From sequence record NC_061446.1: 64,000 nucleotides of DNA; one strand, written 5' to 3'. Positions within the stretch are counted from its first letter, which is position 1. The number at the start of each line of letters is the position of its first letter. This document shows positions 4,084-54,020 of this stretch, in pieces. The position numbers were made by a program, and so were the translations under genes. Under the pieces are notes generated by a model, which had not been told where the DNA came from, ran no database searches, and was given only the letters and a program-made list of their open reading frames with translations.

Positions 4084-6987
4084 TTAGTGCAGAATCTCGT
4101 CAGGTTCCCAGCACAAAATAGGTCTGCGCCATACTTGGAACACACCGATTGGTGCCGCGCGCGCATCGTCAATGAAGCAGTCCATGGTTCGTCCACCACT
4201 GTTACCGCTTTTCATCAACGTCTGCAAGTCAGACAACCAAGAAGCACGGCCACCAGAGTCAGCTTCGAACAACCCTTCCCATACCATATCGAATGCGCCG
4301 TTCCATGCGTTAAAGTGGTGAGACGAGTACGCACCATCACTGACTGTACACAGCACCATGTATTGATAATCTTTGACGCAAGGGATCATGTAGTTATTCC
4401 CGCGCGGCACAGTGGTACTGTTATTGTTGAAGATACACTCCCAACCAGTGCGGTCGGCAGAACCTGTAGTGAGATACAAAGGCCTACGAATGATCATCAT
4501 AATGCCGTTCTCACCGCCACGGTCGCTAGACTTCTCGCAATACGCATTGCATCGCAGCGAACGGTCAACAGTAAACGTGGTAGAGTTTGAGAAGTCACGA
4601 GTGTAGTAGTTCGACCCCCACTTTGGCAAATACTCTGCTGGTGGAACGAAGAAGTGACGTTCGGCCAGCTCAAGTTCACCGTAGCGGTCATACGAGAATA
4701 CGATGTACTCATAACCAGCATCAATCTGAATGTTATGGCCTTGAGAGCCTGGGCCACTCCACTTCCAATGCACCTGCCAGTCGTTTGAGTCACGAGCAGG
4801 TACACCAGTAATCAAATTGTATTTGCGCTCATAGATATGCCACACTTTCCCTTCTTCGGTCGTATTGATATACAACGAGTTTGGGTCATTGATGTTACCG
4901 TTTTCAGTGCCGCAATAAATCTTATGGGATGCACCAGCAGAGTTATAGATAGTACCGCCACCACCGCCGCCGAACATCTCCCAGTTCATCATCAGGTGAG
5001 AGGTACACATTTCGTTCTGACCACTACCATCAGACGTTGTAATCAAATACTCATTCAGGTCCTTGAACGGGTACTTAACGTAGCGGTTGTTGGCTCGATT
5101 GACAACATGCACCCAATCGTGAGACTGAACAAGAGGCTTAGGTGCGCATGGGTTTTCGACAGAGATAACGAACGTCTTTGTCTCATACATAGGCAGTTTC
5201 TTGAAGCGGTTATCACGGAACGTTGACGTATACTTGGCGCCAAAGAATTTGCTCATGTCAGGCACATCAAGAGTCTTGCCGTAGCGAATGCGCATACCAC
5301 GTCCGTTCTCAAGTGCCGCTTGGTTAATCTGCGTCTGAGGAGTGATAGCATTCGTGCCTGTCACATACGGCCAGCCGTTACCGTCGAAGTCAAAGCCTAC
5401 ATCGAACGTAGCATTCGGATCATTATCCTTTTCGCCTTTCAACATCTCAACGATAGCGTTACCTTCTCCGAGTCCCGGGCTACCGAAGCAGCAATACGCA
5501 GCACGATAGTAGAAGTTCGGGCCGTCGAAGATACGGCGTGATGCACCGATGCGATACATAGCAGCGTCGAGGCCGCTAGCTTTGCGGTTGTAGGACGCTT
5601 CATCGAACATCGTAATCAGCACCCAATACGCACTGCTAATCGAGTTCAAGTATGCAGCCATCTGACCCGCATTAACCAAACCACTACCCTTACCCTCTCC
5701 ACCATCACCATGCACATCAAACTGACGACGCTCAACAACTTGCAACGACACTTTATCAATCTTGTAGACTGAATAGCTTCGCGCTTCTGCGTAGCGAGTA
5801 CCGTTGATGATCGTATAACCAGGGTTTGTCTGAGGTGTATAGTTTGAGCCGGAGCCAGGCACACCGTAGCCTACAGCGTGGAAGAAGATACGCCCACGAT
5901 TGACAAGTGATTGATCTGTGTTGTTATACCACGAGATACTGTGCGTCTTATTCGCAAGGCCAGCAGCCCAGTTGTCGGGCTTGGATGGGAATGTATACGC
6001 ATCGAAGTTGGCTTCGTATCGCGTCCCTGGGTCTACGCAGCATACGTCACTAAAGAACGGAGGCGTATATGCCTGAGTGTCATCGTTAATATCGACAGTA
6101 CCGCACCAGAACGGAATCCATGTGCCTGGCTGCCCTGACATTGAAGTCTGGCGAGCACCACCTGTGTCAGTGAAGCGATAGCCTTGAGCACTACGGAATC
6201 CCTGCGTAAGATGAAGCTGGCCGACTTGGTTCCACGCGATATGATCACCGTACTGAGCAACTTGACGGTTACGCGCAGTCTTGGTAGCAACAATGCTTGT
6301 GGTCTTCTGCGTACTAATACCGATCTGAGAGAAGATGGCATTAAAGTTAGCAGCGCCTTCACCAGGACCTTTTTGAAGCACAACAAACGAGATACCCTCT
6401 TTGATGGCGTTAGCAATCGCATTGCACATCTGAGCAGGCATCGTCTGAGAAGTAGCAGATAAACAGAAAATGGTGAGAGCAAACTGTTTAAAGTATTGCT
6501 TATCACCATTGTAGCCGAATGCTCCGGCCTGTATCTCTGCGAGTGTGTGACTGTAAACGTTGTAGCGTTCGCGTTCAAGATAACGAGCGAACTGGCCCCA
6601 GTTGTTATAGGCTTTTGTCTCAGTCACCGAAGCGCCATCGGACATGAGTAGAATATCATACCCATGAGTGAAGTTGCAGTTCATATCCATCATCAGGCGG
6701 ATATGGCGCAGCGCCCCAACAGCTTGGTTAAACTGAGTGTTGTTGTAGTTACCAATCCAACCGTAACCTTCAACGATGTTAAACGAATATGGCGTAACGA
6801 AATCGCCGTTCATGAATGCACTACCAAAGCCACAGATGTAGCCGGATGCGTGTCCATCAACTGCAATACTCGTTAGCGTTGAAAAATCTGGGCTCATGCC
6901 TGCGTCAGCGGAGCCAGGGTTATTCGAGGCTGACCCCGAATAACCGCTGGTGATTCCACGCAGATATAGACAGCTTTGTTTCAGCAT
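4084..6987 (-). CDS. Large fibre/receptor-binding-like protein with an ILEI/PANDER-like (GG-type lectin) domain
   Basis: Segment YSVYKIDK...RQFDVHGD...AAYLNSI...VLITMFDEAS...LDAAMYRIGAS...YRAAYCCFGSPGLGEG follows the ILEI pattern (approx. 5390-5775). Confidence 0.7.
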   Translation of the reverse strand: MLKQSCLYLRGITSGYSGSASNNPGSADAGMSPDFSTLTSIAVDGHASGYICGFGSAFMNGDFVTPYSFNIVEGYGWIGNYNNTQFNQAVGALRHIRLMMDMNCNFTHGYDILLMSDGASVTETKAYNNWGQFARYLERERYNVYSHTLAEIQAGAFGYNGDKQYFKQFALTIFCLSATSQTMPAQMCNAIANAIKEGISFVVLQKGPGEGAANFNAIFSQIGISTQKTTSIVATKTARNRQVAQYGDHIAWNQVGQLHLTQGFRSAQGYRFTDTGGARQTSMSGQPGTWIPFWCGTVDINDDTQAYTPPFFSDVCCVDPGTRYEANFDAYTFPSKPDNWAAGLANKTHSISWYNNTDQSLVNRGRIFFHAVGYGVPGSGSNYTPQTNPGYTIINGTRYAEARSYSVYKIDKVSLQVVERRQFDVHGDGGEGKGSGLVNAGQMAAYLNSISSAYWVLITMFDEASYNRKASGLDAAMYRIGASRRIFDGPNFYYRAAYCCFGSPGLGEGNAIVEMLKGEKDNDPNATFDVGFDFDGNGWPYVTGTNAITPQTQINQAALENGRGMRIRYGKTLDVPDMSKFFGAKYTSTFRDNRFKKLPMYETKTFVISVENPCAPKPLVQSHDWVHVVNRANNRYVKYPFKDLNEYLITTSDGSGQNEMCTSHLMMNWEMFGGGGGGTIYNSAGASHKIYCGTENGNINDPNSLYINTTEEGKVWHIYERKYNLITGVPARDSNDWQVHWKWSGPGSQGHNIQIDAGYEYIVFSYDRYGELELAERHFFVPPAEYLPKWGSNYYTRDFSNSTTFTVDRSLRCNAYCEKSSDRGGENGIMMIIRRPLYLTTGSADRTGWECIFNNNSTTVPRGNNYMIPCVKDYQYMVLCTVSDGAYSSHHFNAWNGAFDMVWEGLFEADSGGRASWLSDLQTLMKSGNSGGRTMDCFIDDARAAPIGVFQVWRRPILCWEPDEILH

Positions 6988-7002
6988 ATCTTCTGCATCC
7001 TG

Positions 7003-9012
7003 TTATTGATATACGACCTCAACGTTGATACGAAGGTCGATGTACTGCTCGCCGCTTTCTGGCGTGTACACAGTCACAATGCCAATCCAACCGTTAGCTG
7101 CTGTTGGTACTTGCACAAGCTCAGTCTGATATACGGAACCAGTCCAAGTGTACGAAGTCTTAGCGCTTACGATTGTACGGTCACCGATGCTAGTGCCCCA
7201 CGGCTCATACTCAAGCGTACCCCACAAGTCGCCGTGTTTCGTTTCGTTCGTCTTCTGGAAGTAACCACCAGTTGCTGCAACACGAGGCGTAACGTCACGG
7301 CCATAGCCAGAAGTAACGATACGAATACCATCGTCGGTACAGATACGGAAGTTGAAGTTAACTGTGTGGTCAACGTTACCGTAGTAGCGCAGAACACCTT
7401 TGCTCAACGTCCAACTGCTGGAAACATCATCAACGGACAGACAGCGATATGGAACAAGATAGTCAACCACGTCAAACTTAGGCGGCTGAATCGGGCAGTA
7501 TACAAAGTAAGACCAATCACATCCGATAGGCGCTGTCGCTCTGACTGTTATGTTGGAGCGTAACGTGTGCTCTGGGTACTTCCAGAACTCAAGCGTACCT
7601 GTCTTACCCGCCGCAACATATTCAGTATCAAGCAGGTTCATGTCTTGGTCGAATACCTCGAACTTGGTGTCAAAGGAGTTCGCTACGCAGACGACAAGGA
7701 CAGCGCGTTGATCAGTTTGTGTTCCTAACGCAAAATTATCTTCTGTCGTTGGGTGGCCGGCAGAGTAGACGCTGTAACTTTCACAAGGGTGCATGTATTC
7801 ACGCGCACCACGTTCACCAGGACAATACAGGCTGTAGAAGCAACTTGCAAGAGACGCAGCGTTACCAAAGTCTTTGCTGACTACGCGCACCATAATGTCA
7901 CAAGCGACGCCCTGAGGGTCAAAGTAGAAGTACAGATAACCTTCACCCGTCTTCGCGTCAAGCGTTGTTGCGATACGACGTCCTGCCTGATACACCTCGA
8001 TGAAGTCAAACGTTTCCCACGAAGTGTAGTCGAGATACATCCAGCCTGCCGTCCAACCAATGAAGTGATAGTATTCGAAGGCGTTAGCATTCTGAATACG
8101 TTCAGCGATAGGCCAAACAGTAGCGTGACACGGAGCAGGGAAGATAGGGCTGCCGATGTAGTCAGGATGAATAACGTCAGGGAAATTGATAACGTCATAT
8201 GATGCCTGACTATCAAGCGCTAACCCACCACGGTCAGAAGGCGCTGCGAGACGAGGCGGATAGACTTCGAGACTCCAGCCATATCCCTGAGTTGTACGCA
8301 CACGCACCATGATGCGCATATCAGCAGCGTCAGGGTCAAACTGGAATTTGATACGAGAGCGTCCAATCAGTTTACCACACGTTGAAGCAACACGCTCACC
8401 CATGTGGTATACGTCAACGCTTGCTCCACCAGGCGCATACGAGGCAATCATTAACTCAACGTAGCCTTCAATAGCAGGCATCGCATAGACTGTCTCTGTA
8501 ATCGTTGCACCACGCCCATGAACAGACGCATACGGCACGTTAGGGTTAGCATAGGTGCCTAGCCCTGCACGAGAAGCAACACCAGAAGGGTCGTATGATT
8601 CGAGGGTCTTGATGCCGGGTCGGTTAATAGATCGACCAGTAGGAGGAGCAAAAGAGTTGACGAGACCGAAGCCAGTGCGACCAGCATCAGGTAAGTCGAA
8701 CCCTGCAGGATAGCCTTTGAGTATATCGTATTTCTCACGACCGCCACTCCCTATCCCGTTACCAGAACCCTTGGTTGTTGATGTAGGACCGCCGCCACAC
8801 GCGCCCGTGTCAAGATTAGAGCACGGGTCATCGTATGTAGGGTCGAACGAGTCATCAATAAGATGCCAACGCTGACCCCATTGGTTACGCACACTAAACT
8901 TCTCTGGAGTTAAAGGCGTCCAGTCTCCCTCTCGTGTGCGTATGAACATGGGCGTGTCCACACAGTCATGCCAACCGTTATTCGCAGCGTTACGAACGCG
9001 AAAACGAGCCAT
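7003..9012 (-). CDS. Virion structural protein with three tandem beta-sandwich repeats
   Basis: Three ~80-aa repeats ending IMVRV..EVYPP / IMVRV..LYCP / ITVRA..VYCP. Confidence 0.7.
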   Translation of the reverse strand: MARFRVRNAANNGWHDCVDTPMFIRTREGDWTPLTPEKFSVRNQWGQRWHLIDDSFDPTYDDPCSNLDTGACGGGPTSTTKGSGNGIGSGGREKYDILKGYPAGFDLPDAGRTGFGLVNSFAPPTGRSINRPGIKTLESYDPSGVASRAGLGTYANPNVPYASVHGRGATITETVYAMPAIEGYVELMIASYAPGGASVDVYHMGERVASTCGKLIGRSRIKFQFDPDAADMRIMVRVRTTQGYGWSLEVYPPRLAAPSDRGGLALDSQASYDVINFPDVIHPDYIGSPIFPAPCHATVWPIAERIQNANAFEYYHFIGWTAGWMYLDYTSWETFDFIEVYQAGRRIATTLDAKTGEGYLYFYFDPQGVACDIMVRVVSKDFGNAASLASCFYSLYCPGERGAREYMHPCESYSVYSAGHPTTEDNFALGTQTDQRAVLVVCVANSFDTKFEVFDQDMNLLDTEYVAAGKTGTLEFWKYPEHTLRSNITVRATAPIGCDWSYFVYCPIQPPKFDVVDYLVPYRCLSVDDVSSSWTLSKGVLRYYGNVDHTVNFNFRICTDDGIRIVTSGYGRDVTPRVAATGGYFQKTNETKHGDLWGTLEYEPWGTSIGDRTIVSAKTSYTWTGSVYQTELVQVPTAANGWIGIVTVYTPESGEQYIDLRINVEVVYQ

Positions 9013-20014: not shown

Positions 20015-20437
20015 TTACTGTGCCCTCATTGCAAACGTAATTGATTGTTTGTCTTCGAGCTTAGGACAACGCCATGTGATTACACACACGTAGGTCTGCT
20101 CGTATTGATCGCTCATGGTGCAGGCTGTCTTGACACTGGTTACGTCCTGCGTGAGACCGTTGTATGGGTCTTCTAGGGCAAGACGCATGTACGTTGCAAT
20201 CCAGTCAGCCGTTGTTTGATCGAACGGCTCAAACAGATACTGATATACATCGGCACCGAAGTTCTCACGCCATTTGCGAGACTTCTTACGCGTACCGATT
20301 ACCATCAGAATCTTCTGGACGATGCTGTCCATGTTCTGCACATTATCGCGCGGTTCAAGTTGAATCCACGCATTAATATCACAATAGATGCGCTCGCTAA
20401 TCGGCACATCTATCAGACGAACTCCGATTCCAGCCAT
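20015..20437 (-). CDS. Baseplate gp25/gpW-like protein
   Basis: IVQKILMVIGTRKKSRKWRENFGADVYQYLFEPFD is a gp25-family pattern. Confidence 0.85.
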   Translation of the reverse strand: MAGIGVRLIDVPISERIYCDINAWIQLEPRDNVQNMDSIVQKILMVIGTRKKSRKWRENFGADVYQYLFEPFDQTTADWIATYMRLALEDPYNGLTQDVTSVKTACTMSDQYEQTYVCVITWRCPKLEDKQSITFAMRAQ

Positions 20438-20727
20438 TAGCCAAATCTCACATTAGAACTACCACTCGAAGCTGTGTCGCCGCAACTGTTAGCGTCACCA
20501 GCACGTTGCGCAGGCTTACCGTTGACACGCACACTAGAACTTGAAGTAGCTTTCCCGACATGGGGAGGCTTCTTTGGTTTCCAGTGAGGACGATAACTAT
20601 CGCCTTGACGAACACTCCCTTTTCCATTCACAAGCACGTTAGATGATGCCTGAGCAGGGACAACAGGAAAATAACCATTGTGTCCAGTAGACAGATCTGT
20701 GCCTAAACGAATAGCTTTCTGACCCAT
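20437..20727 (-). CDS. PAAR spike-tip protein
   Basis: AIRLGTDLSTGH, VNGKPAQRAGDANSCGDT, SSNVRFG. Confidence 0.92.
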   Translation of the reverse strand: MGQKAIRLGTDLSTGHNGYFPVVPAQASSNVLVNGKGSVRQGDSYRPHWKPKKPPHVGKATSSSSVRVNGKPAQRAGDANSCGDTASSGSSNVRFG

Positions 20728-20750
20728 GTTAATTCTCCTCTGTTAGGCAC

Positions 20751-20758
20751 AAATTAGC
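20751..20758 (-). promoter_or_regulatory. GCTAATTT putative late-promoter motif
   Basis: 24 nt upstream of the PAAR start, just after a terminator. Confidence 0.65.
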
Positions 20759-20770
20759 TTGTTATGCAGT

Positions 20771-20807
20771 AGAAACGAAAACGGGCAACCCGAAGGCCGC
20801 CCGTTTT
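20771..20807 (-). terminator. Rho-independent terminator closing the non-coding segment
   Basis: AAAACGGGCGGCC-TTCG-GGTTGCCCGTTTTCGTTTC on the minus strand. Confidence 0.85.
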
Positions 20808-20810
20808 CTT

Positions 20811-22063
20811 TGCTTGGATTTGTGTCGCTTAACTCCCTCACACCCGAAGCGAGTGCTCGGTAGCCGAAGCTACTAAGCCGGAGTTAATGGCCGAGAGTGA
20901 AGCCGCACGGCGCGGCAACAGCATGTGACTCTCGGGACCAGATAGCAAACGACCAAGCATCGCAATTGCTATCAACGACACGAAGAACAAAATCATGTTT
21001 GCTCCTGTGTCTCTACTGTAAGGTAAAACATTTGCAAATGTCGATCAAGTTACTTCAAGTTGCCCTTCGCCCAACTTCACTAGGGTTTCAACTCTCTTTC
21101 TCTCTTTACCGCCTAGGCTGCGGAGACCGCGCACAAGAACAACGCTTCAACGATACGTGGGCAGGAAGACACGTACCGCGTTCACATCGCTCAAGCGAAG
21201 GAGGTTACCCATCGGTGATCTGCGGTGGTTAATACACTCTTTAACAATCGCTCTTGTTGTGCATTAGATCGTGGTAGGAACGCGATTGACCGCTAACAAG
21301 TCCTATACGATATTTCACTACCCGAGAATGGGTATCAGCTATGGCAGCACGTCAACAGCAGCGGGGCAGCGGACACACTCCATTAAGCATTGTTAAGGGC
21401 AATGCTCAACAGGCTGTGAACAGCTTTGACCAAATGCAGAGTCGCTCGTCGCCCGACTTCACTTGAGTATCTCGTCTGCACTCTTTTACTCCCTGAATAC
21501 CGTACAAGGAAGACAGCACCCATGAGGGTCTGCGGATGTTTATCACATTAAGACTCTAGCCAACTTAATCCCGTACGCAGTGTGTTGAGTCGTCCGCTGG
21601 ATGACACACTACATACCCCCTCACGTTCGTGCATAAGTGGGATATAGCTGGTGGAAGGTTGTCATGAAGATTGCATCGCCTGGAGGCCTGCCGTTCTTCC
21701 CAATGCACACACGGTGAAAGGCATATGTGCATCAGGCAGCGTAGCTGCAAACTGCTATCCCGATAAGAGGGGCCACAACGTTGAGAGTACGTTCCGCCTG
21801 TCTTACGCGCCTAGAGGCAACTGCCGTGCCATGTCTGAAAAGAATGAAAAACGCTGGGCCTTGTGAGCGTCAGCAGCAGAGCAGCAGTCTATCGCGTGGG
21901 TGCTGGGGTTAATCCTCACGATTACAGAGCATCACACTCTAACCAGCTGGAGGCTTGCCTACTGTGGAACGCAGCGACAAGTTTACAGTCAAACAACGCC
22001 CGCTAAGTACGCCATCTGACTGGGACAAGTTGATATTACTATCTGCAATTTTTATTTACAGAT
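20811..22063 (-). ncRNA. Candidate giant structured non-coding RNA (~1.25 kb)
   Basis: The only large gap without a credible long ORF; more than 12 local and nested helices, a cUUCGg tetraloop, G-U wobbles mostly on the minus strand, and a downstream terminator. Family not recognised. Confidence 0.6.
20838..20996 (-). CDS. Putative 52-aa small membrane peptide (MILFFVSLIAIAMLGRLLSG...)
   Basis: AGGAG SD 5 nt before ATG 20996, TGA at 20838-20840, hydrophobic N-terminus; SD and ATG are sequestered in a hairpin. Confidence 0.4.
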   Translation of the reverse strand: MILFFVSLIAIAMLGRLLSGPESHMLLPRRAASLSAINSGLVASATEHSLRV

Positions 22064-22064
22064 T

Positions 22065-23828
22065 TTAGAACGCCTTACGCTCAATATTTGAATAAAGAGT
22101 ATCGTAAGGTTCTGAGTACAGTTCAGGTCCGCGTTGTGCGCGAATCGTCACGTAGCCTGTGTGACGGTTGAACGCTGTGATTTCGACAGTCGGCTGTTTA
22201 GGCTTGATAGTCGCATAAATCGGAGCATCCAACGTTGGCTCGTCTGTCTGAATCTTATTTACAGATTGCAGCGCAGCGCCAGAGATAGCAGGCAGATTAA
22301 AACGCAGTTCAGCGCGTTTCTGGCCGAATGCCGCGCGAATCATACCGTTCTCCAACTCTACACCGTTTTGCTTGAGATATGCAGCGATGCGACGTCCGAT
22401 ACCAGTAAGCTGATCGCGAGTGCGCGGGTCAAACGTGCCTTCGAAGCTGATTGCTTCTGCGGGCTGACGTACAGACAAATGCAGGCCTGTGTTGAAATAG
22501 CCTTCGGTCAGTAGACGCAGGATTTCTTTCACGACCTCTTTGGTGTTCGTCTTAATAGCAGCGATACGCAGTTCAGGAACGTCCACTTTAATCGGGTCAC
22601 GAAGCTCGGTCTGGTTGTCCATATAGCCGAGTGAGATATGCTTCGCATTGGCATACGTGTGTTGAAGCACACCAGTCGCGCGAATCAATACAGAGCCACC
22701 TTTTGCGAGATCGTAGAGTTCATCGCTGGTGGTTGTGCTGAACAGGTAATAGTCCGTAGGTACTGCCATGCGATTAACAGCTTCAATCGCTTTGGTTTGA
22801 GCTTCTTTGACAGTTGAGCCAAAGACTACGCGGCTACGATTCGGCTGGGCAGCAGATACAGGGAAGAACGCACCATATACCACGCTAACGTTTTTCTTAA
22901 TCGGGCGCTCGGACTGAATCTTCTTACCGCCAGGCAGAGAAGGTAGCTTAACGCCCACCAGCTTACCTTTGACGATAGCTTTGTTCTCTTTGACCGGCTT
23001 GAGGCTGTCAATGAGTTTCGCCAGATCAGCACCGCTAAGAATCTTCTCCAGCGGAACAGCGAGGTTCTGCGGCAGATAGTGTTTCTTGCGGAACATATAG
23101 ATAACGGTGTCTTTCTTGATCTGCACTGGCGTAGCCATGTTGCGACCAACAACACCGACAGGCTGGAACGTATTTGCTTTGTCATCACCGATGGAGCCGA
23201 ACTGCTTAGTGAACTCAGTCTGGCCGATGATGTTAGCAGCGCGTAAATGGCCACGAATGATGAACACGATTTTCGGGTCATCTTTCATGCGCAACTCGTA
23301 GCGGTCACGGTTCAGATAAACCATGCTGTACTTGTCGCCTTTCTCCAGCTCCAGATCGTACTCGTCGTTAGCGTCATCAACAACGACTTTCTTACCTACG
23401 TAGGTACCGTACGTGCGCGGGCCAGCAGACTCAGAAGCAATCTGCAATGCTTTGCCGCTGTTAGATAGGGAGGCAGCGAAGTCCATAACAGCGGGCATCA
23501 GGTCTAAAGACGATGCTACAGCGTATGGCTTGCGCTTCTCACCAAGATGCAAATGAACAGCGCTACTGCTGGACATGAACACGGTTGTGCCTACATCTTC
23601 GTGTGTACCAGCGAAGTGCATACCGCTAATACGTTCGATGATGTTTGCGTTGAGCGATTGGAAGTTTACTTCGCTACCTGCGGTGAAGTCATAAATTTCA
23701 CCGTTACGCCACGCATAGGCAACGTTGTTTGAGCTTAGACCCACGAACGCATCACCCAACTGACGCACGGTCAAGGGCATGATGCTCAGGTCACGAATAA
23801 TCGAGGACTGCTTTTGAATGAGGTTCAT
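22065..23828 (-). CDS. Putative head-internal protein with the shared ~65-aa domain
   Basis: 587 aa; YGTYVGKKVVV...KGDKYS...KDDPKIVF follows several S-x-S motifs (IASESAG). Confidence 0.65.
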   Translation of the reverse strand: MNLIQKQSSIIRDLSIMPLTVRQLGDAFVGLSSNNVAYAWRNGEIYDFTAGSEVNFQSLNANIIERISGMHFAGTHEDVGTTVFMSSSSAVHLHLGEKRKPYAVASSLDLMPAVMDFAASLSNSGKALQIASESAGPRTYGTYVGKKVVVDDANDEYDLELEKGDKYSMVYLNRDRYELRMKDDPKIVFIIRGHLRAANIIGQTEFTKQFGSIGDDKANTFQPVGVVGRNMATPVQIKKDTVIYMFRKKHYLPQNLAVPLEKILSGADLAKLIDSLKPVKENKAIVKGKLVGVKLPSLPGGKKIQSERPIKKNVSVVYGAFFPVSAAQPNRSRVVFGSTVKEAQTKAIEAVNRMAVPTDYYLFSTTTSDELYDLAKGGSVLIRATGVLQHTYANAKHISLGYMDNQTELRDPIKVDVPELRIAAIKTNTKEVVKEILRLLTEGYFNTGLHLSVRQPAEAISFEGTFDPRTRDQLTGIGRRIAAYLKQNGVELENGMIRAAFGQKRAELRFNLPAISGAALQSVNKIQTDEPTLDAPIYATIKPKQPTVEITAFNRHTGYVTIRAQRGPELYSEPYDTLYSNIERKAF

Positions 23829-52133: not shown

Positions 52134-54020
52134 CTAGCTGGCGATTGGGTCTTTGTTGACGGGATAATCTTCGGCCATGTCGAGCACACGATTGAACAGC
52201 TTAGGCGCCATATCCTTCACATGTTCTGCATAGTCAAAGAGGTTCTGTTTACGCGCACGGTTAACACGTACCTGACGTACTTCATCAGGGCTGTTGGTAA
52301 TATCGTACAGCGTATAGATAACGATGTTGTCGGATTTGGAGTGGGTGCTAACACGCAACACAACCCAATCGCGTTTCAACTTAGCATCAGCACGGAACTG
52401 GAGCACGTCGCCTTCTTCTGCTTCCTCTGCGCGAGCGCTTGGAGTAGATTTGTTGGCAGCAGCGATTTTCTTCGCTGTCTCTTTCGATTCCTGCTCGGCA
52501 GCAGCAACGTCAGAGTCCGTGTCTTCGTCGGCAGATGTTTCGTCTACTGCATCAGATGTGTCTGCATCATCTTCGGCGTCTGAGGCATCTTCGTCGCTGT
52601 CGTCAGATTCTGATTCATCTTCACCTTCCGAATCAGCTCCTCCGTCGTCGGCATCGTCATCATCCACGGATTCGGCGCTGGAGTCGTCCCCCTCATCAGA
52701 ATCGTCTGTATCGCTATCGTCAGAGTCTTCTTCCACATCGGTGTCTTCCTCTTCTTCGCCGTCATCTTCGGAAGTGTCTTCGTCCTCTGAAGGTTCTTCT
52801 TCCTCTTCTTCATCGGCTGGTGCAGGTGCAGCTTTCTTGCCTTTAGCACGAACCTTAGGCGGAGGAGTATCTTCCTCATCCTCTTCCGGTTCGTCAATAT
52901 CAGACAGATCGAGAGAAGGTTCTTCGTGGTCTTCTGAGTCATCACCGCCAAACAGTGAGCCTACAGAATCTTCGATGTTGAACGCATCGCCAGCGAATGG
53001 ACTACGAGACAGAATATCTTCCAGCTTCTGCTCGTCGAGGTCAAGATCGATACCTACTTCTTCGATCTCGTCATCCAGGATTTCTTCTTCAACCACACGA
53101 ACACGCTTACCACGACGGTCAATACCATCTTCGTAGACAGTGCGCACTTCGGCTTTAGGCGCTTCGATCTCACCTGACTTAACCTTGTTACGCAGGTCAC
53201 GCATTTCAGCAGAACGCTCTAAGGCTCTCTTACGCGCTTCTTTCTGGAGTTCTTTGCGTTGTTGCTTCTGCTCCAGAACCTTCGCGTTGTTGGCCAGGCG
53301 TGTTGCTTCTTCCTGCTCTTCCTGAGAACGGCGGCGAGCACGACGCACAACACGGCGATAAGCCTTAATCGTATCTACGTCAACTGTACCTTTCGGCCAG
53401 TCGTTCATTGGCAGAATGTTGGTGTCATGAATCAGCAGGTCATACTGCGCATCATCGACTTTGAGGAACATGCCCTCAGAGTTAATGACGATGCCGCCTT
53501 TACCCTGACGCAAGAAACGAACACCAATCATGTCGTTCTTGTACAGCTTGGTCATACCCTTAGAAGTCTTCACAGGGTATTCTGGACTTGCGACCATGCG
53601 CCACTGGTAGTTATCAAAGTCGATGCCGTAGACAGCTTCTGACTTGACCTTACGCGGGCTGAAACGCGCCGCATCGAACTGAGAGCGCATTAACTGACGC
53701 TGCAATGTTTGTGCACCAGCAGTCTTGGTGCGTTTACCTTCACGGTTAACAACGTCTGGCACCTTACGCAGTTTAGATGCGCGTTCAATCAAGAACAGGC
53801 CAGTTGCTTTATCAAGCGGGAAGTCAACGTGCGGCATATCTGGGAAAATGAGAGTGTAGCGTCCGCCATTACGCAGCGGGAGAATGCCGAATACATCGCC
53901 TTCACGAATCATGCGCTTATGCGTTCGTTGTGCGACTTCTTTTCCACGAGGACCTGTATACTTCATCCACGCGTACTTCGACACGGCATCCTGATAAGAT
54001 GCAGATACGGAAAGTACCAT
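52134..54020 (-). CDS. Putative head-internal protein: two copies of the shared domain, coiled coil, acidic tract
   Basis: MVLSVSAS N-terminus; WMKYTG...EGDVFGI and YQWRMV...KNDMIGV repeats; ~190-aa D/E-rich tract. Confidence 0.7.
   Translation of the reverse strand: MVLSVSASYQDAVSKYAWMKYTGPRGKEVAQRTHKRMIREGDVFGILPLRNGGRYTLIFPDMPHVDFPLDKATGLFLIERASKLRKVPDVVNREGKRTKTAGAQTLQRQLMRSQFDAARFSPRKVKSEAVYGIDFDNYQWRMVASPEYPVKTSKGMTKLYKNDMIGVRFLRQGKGGIVINSEGMFLKVDDAQYDLLIHDTNILPMNDWPKGTVDVDTIKAYRRVVRRARRRSQEEQEEATRLANNAKVLEQKQQRKELQKEARKRALERSAEMRDLRNKVKSGEIEAPKAEVRTVYEDGIDRRGKRVRVVEEEILDDEIEEVGIDLDLDEQKLEDILSRSPFAGDAFNIEDSVGSLFGGDDSEDHEEPSLDLSDIDEPEEDEEDTPPPKVRAKGKKAAPAPADEEEEEEPSEDEDTSEDDGEEEEDTDVEEDSDDSDTDDSDEGDDSSAESVDDDDADDGGADSEGEDESESDDSDEDASDAEDDADTSDAVDETSADEDTDSDVAAAEQESKETAKKIAAANKSTPSARAEEAEEGDVLQFRADAKLKRDWVVLRVSTHSKSDNIVIYTLYDITNSPDEVRQVRVNRARKQNLFDYAEHVKDMAPKLFNRVLDMAEDYPVNKDPIAS

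Follow-up and report, generated by a model that had tools for sequence, protein, structure and literature searches.

The 64,000-nt stretch of sequence record NC_061446.1 analyzed here, hereafter the window, comes from Erwinia phage pEa_SNUABM_30 (Alexandravirus), a jumbo phage, and contains a ~1.3-kb gap (20728-22064, minus strand; 100% identical to MZ443778 82728-84064) between the gene for a 587-aa protein and the start of a PAAR gene. From comparison with related phages, nucleotides 20771-22064 of the minus strand probably encode a large, modular structured RNA that belongs to a previously undescribed family. The unit appears to be made up of a ~1.0-kb structured RNA body followed by a 0.27-kb structured unit that carries a small open reading frame (ORF). 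A first-pass annotation of the same DNA had proposed a giant non-coding RNA of ~1.25 kb. The large structured RNA is borne out by covariation, but the interval is not wholly non-coding: because the last ~270 nt carry a conserved ORF of 52 codons (20838-20996), the non-coding body is ~1.0 kb rather than 1.25 kb. From a nearly invariant block at the 5´ end to an intrinsic terminator, we infer a single primary transcript of ~1.26 kb.

The evidence for this RNA is comparative. We aligned 16 relatives (54-99% identity) with L-INS-i and derived a consensus structure with RNAalifold. The consensus holds 371 pairs, among which 166 changed on both sides, 66 changed on one side and 139 were invariant. 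Canonical pairs filled 94.5% of the cells, compared to 34-42% when the 3´ partners were slid by 1-3 columns, a control that preserves phylogeny, and the 166 two-sided pairs compare with 39-58 after sliding. Twelve column shuffles, refolded in the same way, gave energies of -251 to -286 kcal/mol and 37-61 two-sided pairs (observed, -620.7 kcal/mol and 166). These data show that ~370 base pairs in some 50 helices are held by compensatory change. Eleven of the 12 pairings noted in the first-pass annotation lie in the consensus, including the hairpin at 21986-22022, which is rebuilt with differing letters in each relative. A proposed long-range pairing between 21646-52 and 21942-48 did not hold up, being canonical in 53% of cases, whereas a local alternative (21943-47 with 21902-06) was 100% canonical with exchange among CG, UA and AU pairs.

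The comparison also points to a strand. The RNAalifold energy was lower for the sense alignment (-620.7 kcal/mol) than for the reverse complement (-514.6 kcal/mol). Within the consensus pairs, G-U cells (773) far outnumbered A-C cells (66), in agreement with the earlier remark that most wobbles are G-U on the minus strand, and the constraint therefore acts on a minus-strand transcript. This is the strand of every gene around the gap.

Beyond the small ORF, the gap is non-coding. Each of the six frames contained 7-32 stops in 15 relatives, the variable columns were spread evenly over the three codon phases (269/259/253, thus without three-base periodicity), and the sole conserved ORF in the whole gap was the small one at 20838-20996. 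Together, these results rule out a long coding sequence (CDS) or a pseudogene. Distant phages encode several small ORFs in the equivalent gap, and no trace of them was found when they were sought here. The identity of the gap exceeded that of the four-fold sites of the adjacent gene in six of six comparisons (gap/four-fold, 0.82/0.65, 0.78/0.57, 0.68/0.47 for Alexandra, 0.67/0.42, 0.55/0.39 for Y3 and 0.57/0.51), and the gap is under purifying selection.

Followed 5´ to 3´ along the minus strand, the unit starts with a nearly invariant 33-nt block (22032-22064) that begins with AAUCUGUAAAUAAAA, ends with AUAGUAAUAUC and is a candidate promoter or 5´-end signal. A candidate hairpin just after the upstream stop (22040-22062) is present inside this block in the window and is broken in one relative, the public contig L130. 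Next come a 5´ hairpin with a conserved loop of the CUUAGCGGG type (21986-22022; folding z-score of -2.2), which folds in 16 of 16 relatives with differing stem letters, and a 10-pair hairpin (21954-21981) with two-sided changes at nine of its ten pairs. Domain 1 counts 81 pairs, 40 of them compensatory, and its core (21759-21954) is multi-branched, with 54 pairs and long invariant single strands. For the covariance model of this core, R3, 96.5% of the cells were paired (35-42% when slid), 31 of the 54 pairs changed on both sides, and none of 500 shuffles reached the observed covariation. R3 also recovered the contig L125, which had been kept out of model building (102 bits, E=3.5e-25). Three hairpins follow (21666-21755; z = -2.6), one of which (21700-21735) is flanked by invariant CUGCCUGAUG and CAUUGGG; a 13-pair helix in this region is 99% canonical with six two-sided pairs. 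In the middle region (21548-21660; z = -2.8), a hairpin at 21574-21615 presents invariant CAUCCAGCGGACGACUCAAC, and all ten pairs of the outer helix changed on both sides. Module A (21426-21547) is a closed three-helix structure composed of an AGUG..AACAUCCGCAGA strand, a GUAAAAGAG strand and a hairpin with a conserved 17-nt loop. Domain 3 (21239-21425, with approximate borders) comprises hairpins at 21413-21424, 21380-21412 and 21346-21379 and a branched sub-domain at 21224-21322; the helix formed by 21400-12 and 21380-92 has 13 pairs, eight of them two-sided. The body ends with module B (21041-21238), an expanded second copy of the module with an invariant pyrimidine strand, ACCUCCUU, at 21198-21205.

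Covariance models show that modules A and B are homologous, and a module of 120-200 nt is present twice. On module A, model R2 scored 136 bits; on alignment A6, 90.6% of its cells were paired (26-42% when slid), 21 of 27 pairs changed on both sides and 0 of 500 shuffles reached the observed covariation. Models built from module A only also matched module B in the window (R2, E=6e-8 for a match spanning the full model; R1, a 70-nt hairpin model, E=2e-4), as well as in relatives. Both modules have a closing covarying helix of four pairs, a AACAUCCGCAGA strand or its module B variant, a GUAAA(A)GAG strand and the hairpin with the conserved 17-nt loop. A stray R1 match at 53173-53238 on the minus strand (20.6 bits, E=0.04), which R2 misses, is probably due to chance. 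The ACCUCCUU strand of module B is predicted to be unpaired and is anti-Shine-Dalgarno-like, and CCUCC is found on the same strand at 21949-21953 and 21682-21686 too. No partner covarying with these motifs was identified. Pairing of ACCUCCUU with the AGGAG of the small ORF was considered and rejected since the two do not co-vary: Y3 alters ACCUCCUU only, while pEa_SNUABM_3 and pEa_SNUABM_14 lose AGGAG only.

The 33-nt block at the 5´ end was nearly invariant in 15 relatives at overall identities as low as 54-60%. Because it turns up nowhere else in the window and has a single copy in the genome of every relative, a general phage promoter could be ruled out. Its core, UCUGUAAA, is found once in the window gap; the two further sites in the window both lie within coding sequence. 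In distant phages UCUGUAAA heads each unit, as seen for L132, whose gap has four copies on the same strand (0.45 expected for the whole locus). Sites were located at L132:5873, 6344, 6475 and 7269 and at L131:5831 and 7570, all on the plus strand, and near position 6802 of L134. The first L131 copy comes directly after a putative terminator of the upstream gene that was recognized by eye, at a place where the scanner made no call. At the heads of units in distant phages, UCUGUAAA is followed ~14 nt on by AUAGU or a similar sequence, giving a recurrent bipartite element. The element would fit either a start signal or a processing signal.

The 3´ unit (20771-21040, minus strand) comprises seven covarying hairpins, the small ORF and the terminator, with 66 pairs of which 28 are compensatory, and folds far more stably than shuffles (z = -7.6). 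In distant phages it lies apart from the big RNA, behind a UCUGUAAA element of its own. The small ORF (20838-20996, minus strand) has 52 codons, 47-52 in relatives, and is open with a common stop in 16 of 16 relatives. Its length differences, found in at least five lineages, are whole codons, and AGGAG precedes the AUG in most relatives; in pEa_SNUABM_3 and pEa_SNUABM_14 the AGGAG is missing and the body is kept. We consider it likely that the small ORF is translated. The N-terminal ~19 residues are hydrophobic and can be recognized in Yoloswag gp109 and its relatives. Codon periodicity is absent from the C-terminal 32 codons, whose changes track the covariation of the hairpins. No Pfam or PHROG family was found for the peptide. 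The product would be a single-helix membrane peptide coded within a strongly structured RNA, with the AGGAG and AUG buried in a covarying helix. Within the small ORF, a hairpin loop holds the sequence GCUUGG (20953-20958), the complement of CCAAGC (20812-20817) just upstream of the terminator on the minus strand. A pseudoknot between the two is possible; both are invariant in 16 of 16 relatives.

The strong terminator of the first-pass annotation was recovered by the scanner as an intrinsic terminator at 20777-20808 on the minus strand, with a 14-pair G+C-rich stem that includes eight G-C pairs followed by a U run. In relatives the stem shows compensatory changes with exchange among GC, AU and GU pairs. 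The scanner made no second call of a terminator-like site on the minus strand within the gap. Downstream, a near-invariant 3´ block (20728-20770, minus strand) contains the PAAR ribosome-binding site and is unique in the window. An invariant 11-pair helix is predicted around the terminator, between 20812-20826 and 20746-20758 of the minus strand (CACAAAU with AUUUGUG). In read-through transcripts, this predicted helix would tie the 3´ part of the RNA to the PAAR leader and could serve as a processing or regulatory stem.

By blastn, the stretch is present in 46 phage records, 34 of them full-length at 70-100% identity, all from Erwinia or Dickeya jumbo phages. The same flanking gene pair surrounds every full-length copy, including those of Y3 (Sasquatchvirus; gap of 1267 nt) and the pEa_SNUABM_14 group (1317 nt), and the order and spacing of the domains are constant in some 34 genomes. 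Extra copies were found in public contigs, namely L085, L130 (a new lineage), L125 (where the contig stops within the RNA) and L133. The last, JAVWLC010000001.1 (34.7 kb), is labelled as a metagenome-assembled genome of the actinobacterium Raoultibacter sp., is clearly phage-like and is probably a mis-binned phage contig. It has the RNA at 6814-7898 with an exact 5´ block and represents a natural deletion variant, in which ~240 nt corresponding to the middle hairpin and module A are missing and the rest is kept. Judged by these matches, members of the family occur in Alexandravirus, Sasquatchvirus Y3, the pEa_SNUABM_14 group and several metagenome contigs.

More distant phages (Yoloswag, pEa_SNUABM_5, L131, the JA11/JA29 group and L132) have the same synteny, with an upstream protein 42-51% identical to that of the window. 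Their gap is 1.7-2.4 kb long and consists of 620-1000 unannotated nt, several small ORFs, and 230-690 unannotated nt with a homolog of the 3´ unit. A single copy of the module was detected in pEa_SNUABM_5 (E=1e-5), in L131, a metagenome contig close to pEa_SNUABM_5 (1e-4; 1e-6 when the gap alone was searched), and in Yoloswag (1e-4). With model R3, the domain 1 core was absent from all of the distant genera and was limited to the clade of Alexandravirus, Y3, SNUABM_14 and L125. Salmondvirus-type phages (L132, JA29) were not convincing as carriers of the module, given that their scores of 11-16 bits were equalled by a minus-strand match. A DNA-pattern search of IMG/VR returned ~80 chance loci with a looser pattern and one chance locus, L111, with a stricter one.

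Several points weigh against a single large RNA. The existence of the transcript, its boundaries and the time of its expression are all inferred, and the covariation controls were slid partners and shuffles, which are not phylogeny-aware as R-scape is. The few long-range helices that would join the domains are all invariant, and covariation speaks neither for nor against them. For the body, the minimum free energy (MFE) of the single sequence was -337 kcal/mol compared to -331.8 ± 9.7 kcal/mol for dinucleotide shuffles (z = -0.53; antisense, z = +1.14). The first-pass annotation had listed folding no better than shuffles among the outcomes that would speak against such an RNA, and for the body this is the outcome that was obtained. 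By domain, z ranged from +0.9 for the domain 1 core to -2.8, with the 3´ 270 nt as the exception, and was near 0 for the domain 1 core and both modules. The case for the RNA thus rests on comparison between relatives. Within the body (about 991-992 nt), 544 nt are paired and 447 unpaired, and 114 of the unpaired nucleotides are at least 90% conserved. Conserved unpaired nucleotides in such numbers are commonly seen in RNAs that make tertiary contacts or bind partners, and we attribute the unremarkable folding energy of the body to them. For large RNAs, the MFE z-score is a weak criterion, uninformative for this body, and the comparative evidence is overwhelming. The domains also look separable, given that L133 lacks ~240 nt and that in distant phages the 3´ unit is set apart from the body by ORFs. 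Finally, a sigma-70-like site is present ahead of the small ORF (21015-21044, minus strand; TCGACA, 18 nt, TACAGT; 9/12 matches), although sites of this quality occur at chance level. Between module B and the small ORF there is also an A-U-rich palindromic hairpin (21020-21033, minus strand) followed by UUUU. The site and the hairpin could mark an internal start of transcription or a weak stop signal.

The main rival explanation, which we regard as unlikely, is that domain 1, module A, domain 3, module B and the 3´ unit are separate structured RNAs, made from several starts or by post-transcriptional cutting. Separate RNAs would account for the finding that nearly all covarying helices are local and those between domains invariant, for the closure of each module by its own covarying helix, and for the loss of the middle region and module A from L133 with retention of the remainder. 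The four same-strand copies of UCUGUAAA in the L132 gap and the splitting of units by ORFs in L131, L134 and L135 point in the same direction. In the window gap, however, there is one UCUGUAAA and one terminator-like site on the minus strand, and the constant order and spacing of the domains across the full-length genomes also favor one unit. We give considerably less credence to the idea that the body is a very long structured leader, acting in cis on the small ORF or on read-through into the PAAR and baseplate genes. The small ORF does lie on the same strand and in the same unit as the body, its AGGAG and AUG fall within a covarying helix, and complementary sequences flank the terminator. 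Nevertheless, ~45 conserved helices and a duplicated module in 1 kb seem disproportionate to such a task. In addition, the 3´ unit is several genes away from the body in distant phages, where both persist, and pEa_SNUABM_3 and pEa_SNUABM_14 have lost AGGAG and kept the body.

Divergence of a known class past recognition (GOLLD, ROOL, OLE, a group I/II intron remnant or a phi29-type pRNA) is very improbable, even if the large size and phage setting recall GOLLD and ROOL (PMC12286853). We searched the window and eight relatives against the 4227 families of Rfam 15 in gathering and permissive modes. There was no match at the gathering score in the window and none at E<=1 in the eight relatives. 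In permissive mode on 20600-22300 the best match had E=1.2, and none of the matches was to GOLLD, ROOL, OLE, introns, tmRNA, RNase P, 6S or pRNA; those to STnc320 (on the terminator), MIR398, snoU82P and MicX had E values of 1.2-6 and were dismissed as chance. ARAGORN detected no tRNA or tmRNA in the 64-kb window, and together these searches uphold the earlier statement that hallmarks of tmRNA, RNase P and introns are lacking. Other observations also speak against an intron: both flanking genes are complete, with the upstream gene conserved to its stop and PAAR having its own start, and no ORF for an intron-encoded protein is present. A host origin of the stretch was rejected when blastn against all complete E. 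coli genomes, rRNA included, gave no match. We consider it least plausible, to the point of being scarcely credible, that the gap consists of decayed or unusually decoded protein genes or of a DNA element such as an origin, a packaging site or a protein-binding array. Related phages do have small ORFs in the equivalent gap, and a few GenBank records have a short CDS inside it, but stops occur in all frames of all relatives, the ORFs of relatives have left no trace and codon periodicity is absent. Moreover, the excess of G-U over A-C and the compensatory pairs are those expected of a transcript that is single-stranded and made from one strand, and there is no shift in GC skew.

The preferred reading, a single modular RNA, would work as follows. 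Transcription would start at or just past the 33-nt block (22032-22064), cross the ~1.0-kb body through the 5´ hairpins, domain 1, the middle hairpin, module A, domain 3 and module B, continue through the 270-nt structured unit coding the 52-aa single-helix membrane peptide and end at the terminator at 20777-20808. The body would be a folded RNA scaffold rather than a message and might bind partners or self-organize, with the 114 highly conserved unpaired nucleotides making tertiary contacts or binding partners of phage or host origin in the course of infection. Through the 3´ unit this would be a dual-function transcript, both structured RNA and membrane peptide, in loose parallel to OLE and OapA. 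More tentatively, and with the odds against it, the RNA may be the first representative of a novel class of giant, modular RNAs in phages (~1.0-1.3 kb), a defined three-dimensional RNA or RNA-protein machine present clade-wide in Enterobacterales jumbo phages. Its own peptide might anchor such a machine to the membrane, or the machine might engage the translation apparatus or mRNAs via ACCUCCUU (21198-21205) and CCUCC (21949-53 and 21682-86).

Several known systems resemble parts of this unit. OLE is a large structured RNA of extremophilic Firmicutes encoded beside the gene for the membrane protein OapA. The present locus likewise combines a large RNA with an adjacent membrane-type product, here the 52-aa hydrophobic-helix peptide at the 3´ end; unlike OLE, it is phage-encoded, without an Rfam match, and its peptide is without a Pfam or PHROG family. 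An RNA-peptide interaction as with OLE and OapA is pure conjecture based on this analogy. RNAIII/hld of Staphylococcus and SgrS/SgrT are single transcripts that combine a structured RNA with a small ORF. The present RNA shares this combination and the sequestration of the start region of the ORF in a helix, but is 2-5 times larger and without homology or known target pairing. The phi29 pRNA, also a phage-encoded structured RNA, acts in virion assembly and is thus a precedent for the suggestion in the first-pass annotation that the RNA may be packaged, and the present locus adjoins morphogenesis genes; the pRNA is far smaller, and again there is no Rfam match.

GOLLD, 'exceeding 800 nucleotides', has a conserved and a variable part and is often found near tRNA genes or islands (PMC12286853). 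As for GOLLD, the RNA described here is very large, elaborately folded, phage-encoded and recognized by covariation (PMC12286853). It differs in lacking an Rfam match and tRNA neighbors within 64 kb and in belonging to Enterobacterales jumbo phages. The present body is also longer than the >800 nt of GOLLD (PMC12286853), has one module in two copies and is joined to a small ORF, and a search for covarying loop palindromes gave none. ROOL, found in phages or prophages, is similarly large and rich in helices and is not known to have a protein partner (PMC12286853), but the present RNA has no match to it in Rfam, no tRNA island, and a different size and architecture. GOLLD, ROOL and OLE form homo-oligomers, with covarying loop palindromes in GOLLD and OLE, and RNA-only cages have recently been discovered among large structured RNAs (PMC12286853). 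No loop palindromes covarying as in the GOLLD and OLE multimers were found across the 16 relatives. Two sequences are self-complementary in at least 12 of the 16, invariant UUAA (loop at ~21396) and CAUG (at the start codon), neither of which covaries.

To our knowledge, very few large structured RNAs are known in bacteria and their viruses beyond rRNA, RNase P and self-splicing introns. The discovery of OLE, GOLLD, ROOL and raiA led in each case to structural and functional studies. What is new about the RNA described here is its family, to which no known family is related; large phage RNAs as a broad category have precedents. The suggestion of a possibly new class in the first-pass annotation is supported, given the massive covariation, the lack of an Rfam match and a full-text literature search in which no report of an RNA in these phages was found. 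If correct, this would add a new class of large RNA in cultivated and sequenced phages of tractable hosts (Erwinia, Dickeya). It would come with dozens of natural variants for structure inference, a deletion variant (L133) and an attached small peptide gene, and the repeated module gives a clue to how RNAs of this type enlarge. In present-day phage annotation, genes of this kind are left without an entry or are covered by spurious short CDS.

The gap itself is the sole stretch of at least 250 nt without any ORF of at least 90 aa in the window, the window edge excepted, and ORF coverage thus bears out the claim of a single large ORF-poor gap. The locus had been placed inside the baseplate cluster and in fact lies where a nucleotide-metabolism block meets the baseplate block. 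The downstream PAAR spike-tip gene (20437-20727, minus strand; PF05488, phrog_281 and annotations of relatives) opens the baseplate block and is followed by gp25-like and then gp6-like baseplate genes. Upstream of the 587-aa gene are a 144-aa gene and genes for dTMP kinase, an MmcB-like protein and a NUDIX protein.

All records of the phage relatives lack an RNA annotation at the gap. Short 'hypothetical protein' CDS are annotated there on either strand (L003:1468-1611, L004:1887-2036, L009:1428-1992 and L011:1989-2150); they are not kept between relatives and are probably annotation artefacts. A conserved ORF of ~40 aa lies between the terminator and PAAR in AD1, 2910A, SNUABM_33, SNUABM_3 and distant phages and is absent from the window phage. 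It maps to L005:2831-2956, L006:2826-2954, L007:2826-2954, L008:2823-2945, L131:7943-8070 and L135:7589-7714, and near position 7286 of L134. The 587-aa upstream neighbor (22065-23828, minus strand; phrog_32352) has a KMPT-N domain (Pfam PF20294, E=4e-18), which we take to be a domain of phage polyvalent proteins, and a sequence search of the PDB gave no solved relative. Its gene is syntenic in 57 phage records and still adjoins the RNA locus at protein identities down to 42%.

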